From Blepharisma stoltei ATCC 30299 (Eukaryota; Protista; Ciliophora): a stretch of DNA of 64,000 bases. The position numbers and the translations under genes were made by a program. The notes below the pieces were generated by a model. That model saw only the letters and a list, made by a program, of their open reading frames with translations, was not told the origin of the DNA and did no database searches. How positions within the stretch are numbered: position 1 is the stretch's first letter; every line of letters begins with the position of its first letter. The stretch lies in the NCBI GenBank assembly GCA_965603825.1, contig CBFDEM010000043.1, positions 248,001 to 312,000 on the forward strand. Direction: 5' to 3'. Shown piece after piece: positions 1,994 to 20,340 of the stretch.

Positions 1994-2020
1994 TGATAAA
2001 TTAGAATTATTCGTCTTAAG

Positions 2021-3628
2021 ATGGCTTTTGGAATTGTTATAAATATGAGTGAATCGAGTGAAGAAGAAAATCCATGGTATGACTGGAACAAAACCATGAA
2101 CGAGTCAATTGATGTTGACTCTACAATGGTCAAGTATTCTGTACAAATCGATGACGTCCCTCCTGCTGCTCCTAGGGTATCTCATACAAAGCAGCTGACA
2201 GATACCAAACAGGTGGCGTCTTTTTTTCTTGAAAGACCTATACCAATCCCCAAGCATCGTTCTCCCTATTCTCGAGATCTCAAGCGCATAATTCGTCATC
2301 ATCCTTTCTACCTTCACGCCCTAGTCTATGCCTGTCAAATCCCGATGATTTCTCAAATCCTTCACAATCCGCCCAGAAATTTAATTCAAATTATAAATTC
2401 CACAGACCACAAAGCAAATACTCCGATCATGCTGGCTGTGAAGCTATGCAAAAACTCAAGCGAATACTTAGCAATTGTAGAAATGCTAGCTGACAGTGGC
2501 GCTGATCTCCATATAAAAGATGCAAATGGCTGGTCTTGTGTAGATGAGGCAGTCAGCCAGAAAAATCGCGAGCTTTTAAGTGTTCTGTTTGAGTATCTAT
2601 ACAAAGAAAAAAAAAACAAATGGGAAAGAAATAAAGAAATCGCGTCATCAGCATTGAAAGAGCTCAAAGATTTTTATTTGGAATTCCGATGGCAGTTTAA
2701 GAGCAATTTGATCCCATTGGTAGGAAAAATTGCTCCGCATGATGTCTGCAAACTGTGGAAGATAGGACCTTATATAAGGCTAGATACAACTTTGGTGGGA
2801 TGGAAAAATCTTCGAGCTAAAAGAAGAAGCATTTCTCTTATATTTAAAGATGACATCTATCTGGTGAACCATTCACACAGAACTTATCTAAACCCTTTAG
2901 AAGAGCTAGATTCTGAGGAAAGATGTGAAATTATTAATGATATCATGAAAAATGACCCTGTACAAGGAAATGTTTCTTTGCTGGGGTATAATATTACAGC
3001 GATGAAGAGCTGGAGGAATAAACCTTTATCTAGGGTATATGGAAAGTGGAAATGCAATAAATATAAACTGCAGTTCAGAACTCATACGCAGGTTAAAAAA
3101 AGAGGGAAAGAGATTATAGAAGATAACCAAGACGACTATTTTAATGGGCTCCGTGGATCTTCCCCGAAACCTATATTCCAAATTGGTGATTCTCGGAGAC
3201 CCAGTTTTGTAGGTGACAGCTCAAGGCCAATCCATAGAAATAATGTAAATGACACAGTAACTCAGTCTGTAAAAGAAACAAAAGCATTTTGCTACCTTTG
3301 TGAAGATTTCCCACTTTCGCTTGAAGAATTTGTTTCAGTTTTAAATGTAATCAAGAATGCAAATACAGCTCTTGGCAGGCTTTATGATTTCTTGGAAAAT
3401 GAAGGAATTCATGAGCTCGTCCCAATTGATTCTTTTCCGGTTAAAATAGAAATTCCGATTGTTATGGGAATAAGAGCAAAAGTTGTGTTTACTAACTACA
3501 CTGAGATGAAAAAAGATGATAAAAGCATTTTTGATATACCGAATTATCAGAAGGTGTCAAGGAAAGTTGGCCAAAAAACATTAAGTTCGCCGCGCAAACG
3601 CATTCTGTTTGCTAATATAGTAGCTTAA
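2021..3628 (+). CDS. ANKRD13: ANKRD13-like protein (ankyrin repeats plus GPCR-chaperone domain)
   Basis: Ankyrin repeats (NTPIMLAV, GADLHIKDANGWS); DFYLEFRWQF..IPLV..IAPHDVCKLWK.G..IRLDTTLVG; FPLSL; FPVKIEIP. Start could be the ATG at 2045. Confidence 0.85.
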   Translation: MAFGIVINMSESSEEENPWYDWNKTMNESIDVDSTMVKYSVQIDDVPPAAPRVSHTKQLTDTKQVASFFLERPIPIPKHRSPYSRDLKRIIRHHPFYLHALVYACQIPMISQILHNPPRNLIQIINSTDHKANTPIMLAVKLCKNSSEYLAIVEMLADSGADLHIKDANGWSCVDEAVSQKNRELLSVLFEYLYKEKKNKWERNKEIASSALKELKDFYLEFRWQFKSNLIPLVGKIAPHDVCKLWKIGPYIRLDTTLVGWKNLRAKRRSISLIFKDDIYLVNHSHRTYLNPLEELDSEERCEIINDIMKNDPVQGNVSLLGYNITAMKSWRNKPLSRVYGKWKCNKYKLQFRTHTQVKKRGKEIIEDNQDDYFNGLRGSSPKPIFQIGDSRRPSFVGDSSRPIHRNNVNDTVTQSVKETKAFCYLCEDFPLSLEEFVSVLNVIKNANTALGRLYDFLENEGIHELVPIDSFPVKIEIPIVMGIRAKVVFTNYTEMKKDDKSIFDIPNYQKVSRKVGQKTLSSPRKRILFANIVA

Positions 3629-3960
3629 TTTCAAATTAACACTGTTAATATTAAATTTAACAAATAAAAATATTAAAAACTTATTGATTTTTGTTAAAAT
3701 AATAAAATAATTTGTTTTAATTATATCATTTATTATCCCTCACTGTCCTAGCTATGAGGCGTATTCCTCTCTTTTTTACCCGAATTATGGTGCTCCCGAT
3801 CTTAAGTACTCAATTCTTCCTAATAGCTCCACAGCCTAACGCCTATAGCTTCATAAGAAAGAAGAATTGGTATAATTTCTGATGCTTATAGCAATCTTAA
3901 CAATAAAATCTCACAAATATGAAACATTTAATTATTAAGTTGAGATGCATTTTCATGCAG

Positions 3961-4648
3961 CTATTGATCTACCTTTGTAAAGTCATGAATAGGTATGCTA
4001 TTTAAATCAATCACTTTCAAATTATCCTGAGGATAAGCTATAACTTCTTTAGCTGGAGACTGACTAAATGCATCCTGAGCGTTATCAATCCCTATAGCCT
4101 GTACTTCATTATAAGTTGGCATTACCCTTTGACTGCCAGTCACTTGAACCATTTCGTTTCTCAAATCTCCTTGTACTCCAAGTTTGTAACAGGAATAAAT
4201 GACATAGCAAAAATACATATCAATAAGAACTCCAATAGCATTTAATATAGAGTAAAGATAAAGTGGAGTCATCTCAGGTTCCTCTAGAACTCACCATATG
4301 GCTACAATCCCCCATTCTACAATCCAGCAAAGGATTCTGATTATTTTAGCTTTATAATATTTTTTAACAATACTTCAATCTGGTATTATCAGCTTTAAGC
4401 TTCCGTAAGCTCTGAGTGAGTAATAGCTCATGAATAAAAACGTTAAAGTCACTAAGTTATAAATTACAAAATAGATCGTAATAAAATAGAAAGTTCTTTA
4501 CTGTACGGATCACTTGCATTGATAGCATAAATCCTAAAAATATTGAAGCAATTACATCTAGCACTGAAATAAATTTTGTTCCAGATAAAACTCGACTGCT
4601 ATCTTACGTTTACCAGCAGCAATAAAGTGTAGGAGGTAGTCTCACCAT
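3961..4648 (-). CDS. Small multi-pass membrane protein, paralog 1 (2 tiny introns: 4599-4613, 4452-4467)
   Basis: ATG 4648 MVRLPPTLYCCC; removing the 15-nt and 16-nt GT-AG introns and reading TGA as Trp gives one frame to TAG at 3961; about 4 hydrophobic segments. Confidence 0.8.
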
Positions 4649-4680
4649 TTATTAAAACTTATATATTAATGAGTTCCATA

Positions 4681-5342
4681 GCTGGGGGTATAATATTACA
4701 GTGATGAAGAGCTGGAGGAATAAACCTTTATCTAGGTTATACAAATTGCCCGAGGATGGCGCAAAATAGCGCCATCCTCAGGCAATATGTATATATTGAA
4801 AGTGGAAATGCAATAAATATAAACTGCAGTTCAGAACTCATACACAGGTTAAAAAAAAGAGGGAAAAAGATTATAAAAGATAACCAAGACGACTATTTTA
4901 ATGGGCTCCGTTGATCTTCCCCGAAACCTATATCCAAATTGGTGATTCTCGGAGACCCAGTTTTGTAGGTGACAGCTCAAGGCCAATCCATAGAAATAAT
5001 GTAAATGACACAGTAACTCAGTCTTTAAAAGAAACAAAAGCATTTTGCTACCTTTGTGAAGATTTCCCACTTTCGCTTGAAGAATTTGTTTCAGTTTTAA
5101 ATGTAATCAAGAATGCAAATACAGCTCTTGGCAGGCTTTATGATTTCTTGGAAAATGAAGGAATTCATGAGCTCGTCCCAATTGATTCTTTTCCGGTTAA
5201 AATAGAAATTCCGATTGTTATGGGAATAAGAGCAAAAGTTGTGTTTACTAACTACGCTGAGATAAAAAAGATGATAAAAGCATTTTTGATATACCGAATT
5301 ATCAGAAGGTGTCAAGGAAAGTTGGCCAAAAAACATTATTAA
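4681..5342 (+). pseudogene. 5'-truncated, frameshifted copy of the ANKRD13 3' half
   Basis: Near-identical to 2980-3590 but lacks the 5' half, has single-base indels, a 54-bp insertion and a ~41-bp loss of the last codons. Confidence 0.9.
4738..4793. mobile_element. TA-bounded palindromic insertion (IES/MITE-like hairpin)
   Basis: TATACAAATTGCCCGAGGATGGCGC-AAAATA-GCGCCATCCTCAGGCAATATGTATA; arms 23/25 complementary; absent at the homologous site (~3035) in unit 1. Confidence 0.75.
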
Positions 5343-5674
5343 AATCAAATTAACACTGTTAATATTAAATTTAACAAATGAAAATCATTAAAAACTCTAT
5401 TGATTGTCGTTAGAATAAAGAATAATTTGTTTTAATTAGATCATTTATTATCCCTCACTGTCATAGCTATAAGGGGTTAATTCCTCTTTTTTTGCCCAAA
5501 TTATGGTGCTCGCTATTTTAAGTACTCAATTCTTCCTAATAGCTCCACAGCCTAAAGCCGATAGCTTCACAAAAAGGAAGAATTGGTATAATTTCTGGTG
5601 ATTATAGTAATCTTAACAATAAAATCACAAATGTGAAAAGTTAATTATTAAGTTGAGATGCATTTTTATGCACT

Positions 5675-6362
5675 TTATTGATCTACCTTTGTAAAATCAT
5701 GAATAGGTATGCTATTTAAATCAATCACTTTCAAATTATCCTGAGAATAAGCAATAACTTCTTTGACTGAAGACTGATTAAATGCATCCTGAGTGTTATC
5801 CATCCCTATGGCCTCCACTTCATTATAATCCGGCATCACACTTTGACTGCCAGTCGCTTGGACTATTTCGTTTCTCAAATGTCCTTGTACTCCAAGTTTG
5901 TAGCAAGAATAAATGACATAGCAAAAATTAATATCAACAATAACTCCAATAGCATTTAAAATAGAGTAGCCATAAAGTGGAGATATTTCTGGTTCTTCTA
6001 GAACCCACCATATGGCTACAATCCCCCATTCTACAATCCAGCAAAAGATTCTAATTATTTTAGCTTTATAATATTTTTTCACTCTACTTCAATCTGGCAT
6101 TTCCTTCCTTAAGCTTCAACAAGCTCTGAGTGAGTAATAGCTCATGAATAAAAACATTACAGTCACTAAGTTATAAATTACAAAATAGATTGTAATAAAA
6201 TAGAACGTTCTTTACTGCACGAATCACTTGCCTTGCTAGAATAAATCCTAAAAATATTGAAGCAAATGCATCTAGCACTGAAATAAATTTTGTCCCAGAT
6301 AATAATTCACTGCTATCTTACGTTTACCTGCTGCAACAATGCATAGGAGGTATTCTCACCAT
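5675..6362 (-). CDS. Small multi-pass membrane protein, paralog 2 (introns 6313-6327, 6166-6181)
   Basis: Same exon/intron structure as 3961-4648; ATG 6362 MVRIPPMHCCSS; ends in TAA. Confidence 0.8.
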
Positions 6363-6379
6363 TTATTAAAACTTATATA

Positions 6380-9300
6380 TTAATGAGTTCCATAACCTTC
6401 ACTTCCTTCCAGCACTGCAATTGTCATAAACTTCGAAAACTCTTTATATGATTTATAATTTGGGATATAAATCGTGCTTCCGCATGTTGATGCTGTTGGC
6501 AAAATTCCATTTTCCAGCTGTGGGGAAAGCACAATGCCCCAATTTCTTTGCTTATAAGGAATTCTGCTAGACCCAGTCACAAACCTCAAAAATGCCTTCA
6601 ATATCTCTTCATTAGAATTTTCCAGCCAAGTCCACAGCCATTGCACAACTTGTGATGACAGCCCAGGCCCATAATGCGAAGTCCTTTTCTTAATAAACGA
6701 CAAATTATAAGTCGAGCTTCCATTAAAAAGGATTTGCAAGTCTTCAGGGTTTAAGAATGATAGCAAATCCAGCGTAATTACATCTTGAAAAGATGTGGTA
6801 AAAGACTCCATTTGGAAAGCTACTGATCCATATAAATGCCAAAGGGCTCGAGTTTCAAAATATTGCTGCCTGTTTTCTGCAGTCACTTTTATTTCTGCAC
6901 CATTCGGGATTAGCTCAACTATTTGTTTGTCTTCTGATGTCACTACAAAGGTAAGTTCTGAGTATTCAAGTAAGGCAGGGTCCATGGTAAGGATTTCTTT
7001 TAAGGAGTTATAGAAGATTGGGTCATCGTCTTTTAAATCTTCTGGGATAAGTCCACGGCCTAAAAGCTGCTTATATATAGAAGGAGCGAAATTTATTTCT
7101 AGTAGATATTTGTGGAGAATGGCTTTGGCAAAATAAGCCCCGAGGACATGGAATAATTCTAAGTGGTTAGGGTTTTGGCTTGAAAGGGGGTTGATTTTGA
7201 AGAAATCGCCAACCTGAATGAATAAATGATGCTCAGGAAGCACAATTTCTCTACCTAATTTGTCAAAAAATTCACGACTAAGCCCACCTCCATCAATTCC
7301 AGGCTCATGCTCAAATTTGATATTTAAATATCCCCTCAAAGTTTCTACATCCTCATTAAAATTCTTCCTCAAGCTTTCTAAAAACTGGGTTCTCACCACA
7401 TCCACATTATGATTCTCATAAAACCCATGCAGTCTTTTCGCTTTTTTAAAAAATAATTTCCTTTTCACCTCAAATCTCATAGGCTTTACAGTAAAATCAA
7501 TAGGGGAATTTGATAGTTCTATATTATTGATAAACACCTTCAAAGTTGCGTCGGTAGAAGTTTTGATTTTAATTATAAGCAAAACTTGGCCTAATTCTTG
7601 CAAAAATTTCAGCTTTACAGGGTATTCTTTGCCAGCTTTATTGAAAAGAGTCGCTGATATCAGTACATTAGAAGCTAAAGACATATGGTTTTTGAAAACT
7701 TCAGCGTTAATTGATGGTAATGGAGATTCTAAATCAACCTCTGGGGAAGGGATAAATTCTTCAGCGTTAGGATTTAATTCAAATGGTTTTTCTAGTATTT
7801 TATGAGCTTCAAAATCGCATGGAGAATAAAAGTTTTTGTATTCATCACAGACTTTGACGAACACCTTATGCTTTTCCATTTGAAAAATATCTCCAACATT
7901 AGCAACTATACAGTGACTTGGAGAAATTTTTGCTGGGCATACATATATTGGCTTAGATGATTTTAGCTTGTGAGAGTTCAAGTAAAAAATGTAGAATCCT
8001 TTGCTAAATGGTGTCCACTTTATAATGCAGCTGTCAGAAGAATGGGGATAGATAGTAGCTTCATACTCAACTTCAGGGTTCTGCTTGTGCTTGAAAACTC
8101 CTTGAAGATGATTTATGTTGTAGCTTCCACGCAAATCACAGTCTGCACGAATTAGTAATAAATCTGAGCGTTCACAGCCAGCTCGAGAGCAGATAGCATC
8201 TTTCAAGCTTTTCGGGTGAGAAGGAGATTTATTGCAGAGCTTTATCAATAAATTTTTCTTTTTAGATTTGTTTTTAACTCTTAATTTTTCATCAGAAGAA
8301 GTAGCAATATATGAATGCTTATAAGAGAGCTGCTTTTCTGTTAATTCTATTTGTAAGTAGCTTTCATAATGGTTTAAAAGCAGTGGCTTAGCTTTTTCGT
8401 TTCCGCTTTGGGTATGAGTAAGAAATCCTCTATCAGTTGGGTTTTTATTGGAAAAATTCATAATTGGCTGAGGAACTCCAGTTTTTTTAGAAATAAAATA
8501 AAACACCCTTTTTTCATTTGACGTCCAATTAATGCTAATTAAATAGATTTCAGGAGTAATTTTGATATAGCGATAAGAGTTCTGATGTCCTAAAGAGTAT
8601 TCTTCTCCAATGCATGAAATAAAAAAATCATTGGAAACGATTAAGTCATAATCTTCTAATTGTTCATTATTTATATTGCTTAACAAGTTGAAGATAGATG
8701 GTGGAGTTTTGGTAGAATGCTTAAATTGTGGTATTTCCTGCATCAATAGTTTGTATTGATTTTGCTTTTGTTTACTGGAATCATAAAATTCAATTAAATG
8801 CTTTGGGATTTGTGGGCCTGTATAAACTATTTTTGAATCAATAGGGAATCCATTGTCGAAGAAAACAATTAATATACAAGAATTTTCAGGAAGGTTTTTT
8901 ATCGAAAAAATGTCTTTTGTAAGCTCAACCGAAAATGCTTGTAAGTTATCATAGCAAATTCCTGTTGCTGTTATATAATCTAATTTTCCAAAATGAACAA
9001 TATAATTTAAAACTCCTTCAGGGCTAAAAAGTACTGAATTAAAATCAGCAGGCAAAATTTTAAATAAATTTACCTCATGCCATGTATTTTCTTTAAGCTT
9101 AACTAAAAGATCAAAAATTGATGGAATATTCACCATTTCAGCAGCTGTAATAGAAACTAATAAAACTTCATTAATAGAAATTGCTAATAATTCATCCGGA
9201 TTATTCTTGTATTGATTTATTTCGATCATCACATCAATATTGAGAATTTTTCCAACCATATCGAAATGCTTACTGATTCGAGGTGCTTGTGAAAAAAGGA

Positions 9301-18300: not shown

Positions 18301-18514
18301 CTGTTTTTCCACATAAATCCTGTTGGGCTAAAATTGAAGTATCAAAAGCGAATAAGCCCATAATTAGATGTGATCTTTTAGCCAAGACAAGATGATGAAA
18401 AATATTGAGTAACAAGTGATCTTGGCCTTGCAAAGAGGAGCTTTGAACCTTTAAAAAGGATAGGACTTGAAAGTCATCAGAATTCGAGTAGATTAGCTCT
18501 AAAGCCTCTTCCAT
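6380..18514 (-). CDS. Giant (~4044 aa) ankyrin-repeat / filamin-Ig / HECT E3 ubiquitin ligase
   Basis: All 13 track ORFs from 18514 to 6380 share one frame, and the junctions checked are TGA. Ankyrin motifs (GKTVLHFLA, TALHWAA, TPLDVAC), filamin-like strands, and HECT (EPGIDGGGLSREFF; FLRFVTGSSRIP; LPTASTC). Confidence 0.9.
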
Positions 18515-18556
18515 GTTTATTGCTTAATAATTTACTTATTAATAGAAAAGGATAAA

Positions 18557-19276
18557 TTATAGCTTCTTTCTTTTCCAGCATTGAAGAAGGTAGATTATTG
18601 ATGTCACTGTTCCCAGTATTCCAATTATTGTAGGGTGGAATTTCTTTTTATCTAAATAATAAATCGCAATTGGGATGTCAAATATTGATTTTATCATGAC
18701 CCATTGCAAAAACTCGTTTTTTCTTACCAGTGCTCTATATCTGTCTTTTGATTGTGAAAATTGAGTATGTAGATTTTGGTCTCTCTATATAGAAATTACC
18801 ATTTTTTGAAGCTGGATGTTCCCTTTGTGGACTTTAATTGCATTAATTAGCGCAATTAAGCCGTTATCAATAACCCAGCTCAGGTTCCTTAAAACATACA
18901 CAAGAAACACAGTTTTTGATTCCTGAGGCATATGAATAATTTCAATTTTGTGCAAAAATAAAAAATGATCTGAAAAGTAATAGACTAAAGAGACTAAATT
19001 TTCTAGGGTTTTTGCCAATTTGATTATATCCAAATTCTTATTAGAAAGCCTTCTATATAAAGTTATAAGAACTCCTATTGGCATCCCAAATCGTAAAACT
19101 TTTCTCACCATGTGAAGATTTCCATTAAGTCTCCCTGCTTTTTTGGAAATTTCATTCATATTGGTATACTTCAAGCCTGATTTAATACCGAGAGAGAAAT
19201 ATTGAACTAATCGAATGCATTGCTCTCTAAAATCTGATTGGTTGAGCAAGGATAGATATTTCTCTGCACTTTCCAT
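18557..19276 (-). CDS. PEX11: Peroxisomal membrane protein PEX11 (intron 18785-18799)
   Basis: REQCIRLVQY...RKVLRFG...YYFSDH; removing GTAATTTCTATATAG adds the C-terminus (FDIPIAIYYL...IGILGTVTS...W) to TAA at 18557. Confidence 0.85.
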
Positions 19277-19362
19277 ATTACTATAATATTCATCAATTCC
19301 TAATCTATTTACGAGATCTTTTCAAATTAGTTATCGATTAAAAAATTGTTATTATACCATTA

Positions 19363-20340
19363 TTATTTTCAATTTATAAGTACAGGATTTGGAGCATTTT
19401 GATATTCCCGATCTATTTGCAATAGCTCTTTTCTTGATAAAGTTATATTAAATGCAGCTCGTAATAGTAAATCTGCATCTAAACTAGTCTCAATCCTTCG
19501 AATTCCTGCCAGCAAATTTTCAAAGCTGAGATTTATCAAGTCATTTTTATGAAGTTTAAAAAAACTTAAAAATACCCTGAAAAGTATTTTTGGGCCTTCA
19601 AGCAAAAAGCAATCCCAAATCCTCAAAACTGTGTCGATATTAAAAGAGAAAGTAAACAAGGTCATAAATCACTGCATTGCGTAAATCTGAGGATAAAATT
19701 CCGACTTGGCAAATTTTTTCCATAAGGCAGGCTCATGAAGTTTTAGTAAATAATTGGCTTTGTATAAGCTTTGATATACTTTTGCCATTCCCTGCATATA
19801 ATAGCCTCTCATTTGATAATTATACATGAAGCTTACAAGCATTCAAAACGCGCTTTCTTCATCAACATGCATTAAAAAGACTCCGACTATATATGCCATT
19901 CCTTGGCAGTAGCCGATTTCTGGGTCTAGAAATGCATAAGCTCGTAAAATGTTAGTCAAAGACTGCTGGCCACCTTGACGCACAAATAAAAAATGCTCAG
20001 GAAAAGTACGGCTTACGTCCTTTGTAATGTCAAGCATGCAAGGCGGATCTTCTTCGCGGTTACAGAGCCTAAAATATAGATGATGAGGATAGCTGTTTTG
20101 AACTTCAAGTCCTTTACAGAGCATAAATCAAACTCTTCCACGAACATTACTCGGGATCCCTTTTCTGCATCTTTGCTTAAGAATTTTATATTTTGGAGTT
20201 GAGTAGTTTGAATAGTCAGATCAATTTGATAGCATGTGGTCTCATATTTTAATCTGAGCAGCTGCTTTGGTCTGTGCTGAGGAAATATCTCTTTTGGTTT
20301 GATCTGAAAGAAATCTTGGTCTGTCTATGTAATCTATCAT
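19363..20340 (-). CDS. Rab-GAP TBC domain protein
   Basis: RKGIPSNVRGRVW, DITKDVSRTFP, IGYCQGM, WFMTLF, VLRIWDCFLLEG; several conserved Trp are TGA; TAA at 19363. Confidence 0.9.

Follow-up and report, generated by a model that had tools for sequence, protein, structure and literature searches.

The window, a stretch of 64,000 nucleotides from contig CBFDEM010000043.1 of Blepharisma stoltei ATCC 30299 (positions 248,001 to 312,000), holds a 1.7-kb tandem duplication whose second unit carries a TA-bounded palindrome of 56 nt at 4738–4793 (Table 1). Unit 1 includes the 3′ part of a 542-codon open reading frame (ORF) on the plus strand (2000–3625), plus a 178-codon minus-strand ORF. In unit 2, the duplicate of this 3′ part is truncated and frame-broken, and the element lies within it; when the parental frame is read by hand, the loop of the window copy yields a TAG stop. 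The copy reads TA-TACAAATTGCCCGAGGATGGCGC-AAAATA-GCGCCATCCTCAGGCAATATGTA-TA. An inverted-repeat search placed its arms, counted with the TAs, at 4738–4762 and 4769–4793 (25 nt each, 92% complementary, 23 of 25 positions paired), with 6 nt between them. Folded as single-stranded DNA, the copy reached −23.3 kcal/mol (z = −9.0), a value equaled by none of 200 shuffles. The arm core has two matches within the window, compared with 0.01 expected.

Table 1. The window copy of the palindromic element and the tandem duplication that bears it (positions in the window)
Feature	Position	Strand	Basis
Tandem duplication unit 1	2980..4680	.	Self-comparison
Empty site TATAT in unit 1	3036..3040	.	Spacing of duplication copies
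Tandem duplication unit 2, bearing the element	4681..6394	.	Self-comparison
Left TA of target duplication	4738..4739	.	TA..TA in 41/44 copies; single TA at empty sites
52-bp element proper, TAC...GTA; subfamily A	4740..4791	.	Sequence and family alignment
Left 23-nt terminal inverted repeat (arm)	4740..4762	.	Repeat search and folding
6-nt loop AAAATA	4763..4768	.	Family alignment
Right 23-nt terminal inverted repeat; 2 mismatches vs. left arm	4769..4791	.	
Right TA of target duplication	4792..4793	.	TA flanks of family copies

The spacing between the two units is 1702 before the element site and 1756 after it, and unit 2 is therefore longer by exactly 54 bp. Where unit 1 reads CTAGGG-TATAT-GGAAAG, the counterpart of TATAT in unit 2 occupies 59 nt, and removing 52 bp and one TA from unit 2 gives the sequence of unit 1. 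The junction in the window is ambiguous over 4 nt (TATA); cleaner empty sites elsewhere set the duplication as TA. An earlier sequence-only reading of this DNA had described the 54-bp TA-bounded insertion, its hairpin and loop and the empty site in unit 1, and had proposed that removal leaving one TA restores colinearity. The repeat search and the duplication spacing bear out every one of these elements. The window copy is best explained as a neutral insertion into a truncated duplicate, later than the duplication itself. The duplication is a mosaic, with 95–98% identity over the first ∼600 bp, 89% over the remainder and a 41-nt indel at 3584–3624, a pattern suggestive of gene conversion following duplication. 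Near position 6347, the start of the duplication unit appears a third time as a partial repeat.

A family of 52-bp palindromes

The published somatic assembly of B. stoltei ATCC 30299 comprises 41 Mbp in 64 telomere-to-telomere contigs (PMC9942806). We searched the somatic assembly (41,464,486 bases, or 41.46 Mb, in 64 contigs) with the arm TTGCCCGAGGATGGCGC at up to two mismatches. This search, which is the copy-number check that the sequence-only reading had proposed, returned 85 matches; the reversed control returned none. All 85 belong to inverted pairs 5–6 nt apart, with a shorter loop in one copy, and resolve into 44 palindromes, such that the family has at least 44 copies at the thresholds used. 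These copies are spread over 33 of the 64 contigs, and their flanks are unrelated. The same search found no solitary arm in the somatic assembly. No further members came from a looser paired pattern, a three-mismatch two-arm search or an 8+8-nt core pattern. The sole extra match of the loosest core pattern was a weak 25-nt palindrome, GAAGATGGAATATGGTGCCATCTTC, at C24:110114–110138, which may be either a chance occurrence or a decayed relative. A metagenome scan with the element core gave 0 matches, and a geometry-based scan of 303 kb found no other family of TA-bounded, GC-rich palindromes.

The family consensus, including both TAs, is TATAG-NAA-TTGCCCGAGGATGGCGC-loop6(N6)-GCGCCATCCTCGGGCAA-TTN-CTATA, beyond which there is no similarity. 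Including both TAs, 39 copies are 56 nt long, four are 55 nt and one is 53 nt. The element has no coding capacity of its own and consists of two arms and a 6-nt loop, 52 bp in all. We distinguished subfamilies A (32 copies), B (9 copies) and C (3 copies). The nine B copies are identical across all 56 nt (TATAGCGCTTTCCC..., loop GGAATG), and the three C copies carry ..GATGATGG.. with the loop ATTGA. The loop is the only part of the element that has polarity, and since it occurs both as a given sequence and as its complement (AAGATA/TATCTT, AAAATA/TATTTT, GGAATG/CATTCC), the element inserts in both orientations. The 54-bp insert of the window is one copy of a previously undescribed family of 52-bp palindromic mini-transposons.

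TA..TA flanks were found in 41 of the 44 copies, the sole other preference being a weak A at −1. Three comparisons of filled and empty DNA sites (in the window, on contig 22 and on contig 4) each gave a clean gain of 54 bp, made up of 52 bp and one TA. On contig 22, a 1062-codon ORF (locus L057, 2474–5659) contains a B copy at 3869–3924. Four paralogs with 61–73% protein identity are empty and read AAAAAT|TATGTT; the filled gene reads AAAAAT-TA[TAG...CTA]TA-TGTT and is longer by exactly 54 bp. Because this empty site has a TA but not a TATA, the duplication is TA and the element is 52 bp. Duplication of TATA, as in BstTc1, is ruled out by the same site and by empty sites that differ by 54 rather than 52 bp. 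At the protein level, annotated P0001 and its 75%-identical paralog P0002 are separated by a 17-residue gap that stems from the 18 added codons. When 54 bp are removed from a filled gene on contig 48 (locus L073), its translation aligns without a gap across the junction to P0004, an MMETSP transcript protein from what we take, given the level of identity, to be another Blepharisma species. Identity is 76% over the query, and KKPTKELW.K.F..V is matched upstream of the junction. In these searches, proteins with in-frame TGA were queried as TGA-free pieces. Such a gap-free alignment argues against an old, immobile motif. The copies, the empty sites and the subfamilies together are best explained by transposition. 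The sequence-only reading had proposed that such mobile micro-palindromes may form a family not described before and persist in the somatic genome, and the 44 copies, the TA duplication and the empty sites agree with it.

Across the 44 copies, complementarity holds in 95.6% of arm cells. Seven of the 25 arm pairs have changed on both sides, with a covariation score that no shuffle matched, and the arm differences that define the three subfamilies match on both sides. Symmetric changes of this kind distinguish B, C and the variant TATAC...GTATA, whose C at element position 3 is common to the window copy and the copy in L034; another, GCAC/GTGC, is found in one A copy and one C copy. Symmetry would be favored because a transposase must recognize both ends. 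Symmetric differences at multiple sites also suggest that, in a hairpin or cruciform, one arm may serve as the template for correcting the other.

On contig 4, two genes are filled and seven paralogs are empty at the corresponding position. In the two filled genes, the element occupies one and the same homologous TA: a B copy at ∼109 kb (L059:4077–4132) and an A copy at ∼84 kb (L060:3695–3750). Their flanks are only about 60–65% identical, and in a tree of the nine paralogs the sisters of each filled gene are empty (supports 96/95 and 100/100). That one TA should have received two subfamilies is not accounted for by random TA targeting. The shared site may reflect a double hit at a preferred TA (a hotspot), an old insertion followed by repeated precise loss or conversion, or the replacement of one subfamily by another via templated repair.

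Copies in and around genes

To see which copies fall within ORFs, we deleted the 54 bp and counted a site as interior to an ORF if any frame continued without a stop for 50 codons or more in both directions (TGA = Trp). Only 9 of the 44 copies occupy such sites, compared with 2093 of 3000 TA positions drawn at random from the window (70%; p = 2e-11). Five of the nine are in frame and open (L002, L043, L045, L047 and L055), three of them in host ORFs of 1062, 1028 and 736 codons. The other four (L021, on the minus strand, L032, L035 and L052) interrupt their ORFs via the TAG frame. Frames 0 and 1 of the element are stop-free on both strands in 41–43 of the 44 copies, and frame 2 contains a stop in 41–42. 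As 54 bp amounts to 18 codons and two of the three frames are stop-free, two-thirds of genic insertions would leave the reading frame open. Selection on frame was considered and is unsupported: five open and four stop-frame copies do not depart from the 2:1 expected by chance, and we therefore claim permissiveness and not selection. Four of the nine identical B copies are genic, compared with 5 of the 35 others; the B copies are presumably young, and the trend is consistent with slow purging.

At its length, the element escapes the repeat finders applied to the B. stoltei genome, and public gene models are affected as a result. Public annotation translates through the copy in P0001, and this gene model, together with the continuity of the ORFs, suggests that the 18 added residues may be translated. 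The public model P0003 (208 aa) begins at an internal Met downstream of its copy. At this locus (L073:3515–4537, contig 48), the TAG frame of the element removes ∼115 N-terminal codons from P0003, of which ∼53 are matched in P0004. Gene models near other copies may be affected in the same way. On contig 50, an A copy (L035; L074:4279–4334) interrupts a retroviral-type integrase-like ORF, a transposon inside the gene of another mobile element. Read by eye, the insertion lies just before the putative first catalytic Asp (..ERVQI|DLFELT..).

Sequencing reads and rival explanations

We aligned read contigs from four runs (X1, X6, X8 and X10) to L057:1500–7400, a region with two copies, one (B) in a gene and the other (A) between genes. 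In the DNA runs X1 and X6, contigs break off within each element, as they should where a repeat exceeds the word length of the assembler. Neither run contains a DNA joint that skips either of these two copies, although Logan contigs lose rare variants, such that low-level excision at these sites could go undetected. DNA runs from two studies contain 0.88–0.92 of the words of window positions 2500–8400. For the window copy itself, a contig of run X10 has a 30-nt loose end that, by eye, matches positions 4716–4745 and thus the left junction of the copy. This is independent but indirect support from reads, on a point for which the sequence-only reading had asked for reads. Runs X8 and X10, whose label as RNA is a guess, each have one contig that joins position 3856 of L057 to 3919 and skips 62 nt (3857–3918). 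The skip, which the DNA runs do not show, is flanked by two 5-nt GCTAT direct repeats, has GC..GC ends and breaks the frame. Folded as RNA, the stretch forms a stem of 25 perfect pairs at −59 kcal/mol. The skip is probably a jump of reverse transcriptase over the hairpin, which would imply that the hairpin was present in the transcript.

Run X6 has 778 contigs at L057 and X1 has 151, a difference of about fivefold. In X6, summed depth at the element bins (L057:3864–4060 and 6031–6424) is ∼18,500–20,000, compared with ∼115 elsewhere, or ∼160 times the single-copy level. This excess, with its many different flanks, is a lead to many more copies, possibly hundreds, that may lie outside the somatic assembly, possibly in germline-limited DNA.

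The sequence-only reading labeled the insert a retained IES and attributed its retention to its position in a pseudogene. A related explanation is that the copies are “cryptic” IESs that the excisase cuts from some somatic molecules, with the assembly showing the unexcised majority. The element is TA-bounded and has inverted repeats, as Blepharisma IESs do; 10,048 candidates of at least 50 bp with about 5% excision have been reported (SI of PMC9942856); and the terminus TATAGAAATT fits 10 of 11 positions of TATAgnnntTT, the end signature of the ∼153-bp and ∼174-bp IES classes (PMC9942856). Precise removal would restore four likely real genes that are now interrupted by the stop frame, and X6 has about five times more element-bearing contigs than X1. 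We nevertheless consider this explanation unlikely. All 44 copies are present in the somatic assembly, and the DNA contigs show no excised form at the two L057 copies, which leaves the retained-IES label unproven. Annotation reads through the copy in P0001 and starts P0003 downstream of its copy, cryptic IES lengths peak at 72 bp with no mention of 54 bp in the accessible part of the source (SI of PMC9942856), and strong depletion from ORFs is what a non-excised element predicts. At 54 bp, the insert also falls short of the excised length classes (65 bp and up); its boundary repeats are of the TA type. As for the pseudogene, the window copy does lie in a truncated duplicate, but since all 44 copies are somatic and some occupy long intact ORFs, retention characterizes the family rather than the site.

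That the hairpin is instead removed from transcripts like an intron, leaving genic copies harmless, appears very unlikely. The 62-nt joint in X8 and X10 does span almost the whole element and is missing from DNA runs, but no register within its 5-nt ambiguity gives GT..AG, the frame is shifted, and GCTAT repeats at the foot of so stable a stem are the signature of a reverse transcriptase jump. A spliceosomal intron or introner is rejected, as the element ends in TAG..CTA and the sole RNA joint is GC..GC, 62 nt long and frame-breaking. We give very little credence to a host cis-acting element or small RNA gene (a regulatory hairpin, terminator or protein-binding palindrome) conserved for its structure. 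Covariation and palindromy of the arms and the intergenic majority of copies would suit it, but copies also lie inside coding sequences and break some genes, paralogs and the P0004 transcript lack the element cleanly with a TA footprint, no Rfam family came near its gathering score (sub-threshold chance matches only), and position relative to genes is not conserved. Finally, strand switching during replication can make palindromes, yet a one-off event of local template switching, or an assembly artifact, has a negligible probability here. The sequence-only reading had named template switching and a single-copy sequence as what would overturn it, and both are excluded by 44 dispersed copies with an identical 52-bp design and boundaries; the junction of the window copy is also seen in the independent run X10.

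A probable micro-MITE below the size of excised elements

We compared the element with known systems of similar design. MADE1 is a human MITE derived from Hsmar1, and MITEs derived from Tc1/mariner elements duplicate TA. MADE1 consists of two 37-bp terminal inverted repeats separated by 6 bp; this near-perfect palindrome folds into a stable hairpin on transcription, and MADE1 is reported to avoid protein-coding exons (PMC1784062). The Blepharisma element shares a near-identical architecture with MADE1/Stowaway-type MITEs and, like them, is dispersed, multi-copy and non-coding. It differs from MADE1 in its length (52 bp vs. 80 bp), in its host, a ciliate with separate germline and soma, and in the presence of several copies in frame within ORFs; in addition, a parent transposon with matching ends was not found. 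To our knowledge, 52 bp is among the shortest lengths of such elements, near the lower limit of size at which DNA still acts as a transposon.

The TA-bounded IESs of Paramecium have Tc1/mariner-like ends with the consensus TAYAG. The TA and TAG... ends of our element fit TA-YAG, but Paramecium IESs are excised from the soma, and the Blepharisma element was not seen excised. For Paramecium IES ends, TAYNR is quoted in PMC9942856. In Blepharisma, the repeats that most often bound IESs are TA, TAT and TATA. MITE-type IESs of this organism (“MITIES”) include BogoMITE, the palindromic rnd-1_family-87 and family-160, which are 153–389 bp long, germline-limited and excised; in BogoMITE, the duplication is TAA/TTA and the inverted repeat is C-rich (PMC9942856). 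Compared by description, the MITIES and our element share the organism, TA-type boundaries, inverted-repeat or palindromic structure and MITE nature; they differ in that the element is 52 bp long and present in the somatic assembly. The likeness of TATAGAAATT to TATAgnnntTT may be a lead to a parent family. Bogo (TAA duplication) and BstTc1 (TATA duplication) are rejected as sources because their published C-rich ends are unrelated to those of the element. With these inverted repeats differing and solitary arms absent from the somatic assembly, no autonomous partner was found. The available main text and SI of PMC9942856 and the available main text of PMC9942806 mention neither a 52/54-bp element nor a somatic palindrome.

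Taken jointly, these data very probably describe a non-autonomous, cut-and-paste micro-MITE that duplicates TA, is mobilized in trans in the germline, is too short for excision and is exposed in the soma. The element consists of two 23-bp terminal inverted repeats and a 6-bp spacer, and its insertion at a TA, with duplication, adds 54 bp. Mobilization would take place in the germline nucleus by a TA-duplicating transposase supplied in trans, of the Tc1/mariner type or possibly from PiggyBac-derived TA-cutting machinery. The first peak of Blepharisma IES lengths is at 65 bp, with a periodicity of about 10–11 bp (PMC9942856). As the sequence-only reading had noted, the insert is shorter than this first class. 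Judging from that distribution, the developmental excisase would skip the element, since the shortest class that is excised efficiently exceeds 54 bp by about one helical turn. Each germline insertion would then be carried into the soma and come under selection there, and surviving copies would be mostly intergenic, or genic where a stop-free frame adds 18 codons.

A reading of the family as sub-threshold IESs is possible but doubtful. The family would spread in the germline as Blepharisma MITE-IESs do, sit one turn below the smallest loop of a PiggyBac-derived excisase and form the only class of invader not hidden from the soma; its copies would be transcribed and translated in open frames, its arms would be equalized by hairpin-templated correction, and X6 would hint at many more copies in DNA absent from the somatic assembly.

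Rickettsia palindromic elements are mobile bacterial repeats of about 100–150 bp that sit in frame in protein-coding genes and add a peptide segment. They resemble the Blepharisma element only as palindromic mobile repeats able to sit in frame; the sequences are unrelated, and no membership is implied. If true, the 18-residue inserts would be a eukaryotic counterpart of these elements. Genome editing in ciliates, by eliminating germline transposons from the soma, is thought to shield them from selection, and this family is visibly unshielded. It occupies the expressed genome, where its copies are depleted within ORFs, cut some genes short and lengthen others by 18 codons. The family thereby provides a natural test of how short an IES can be and still be excised, and of whether MITEs seed IESs.
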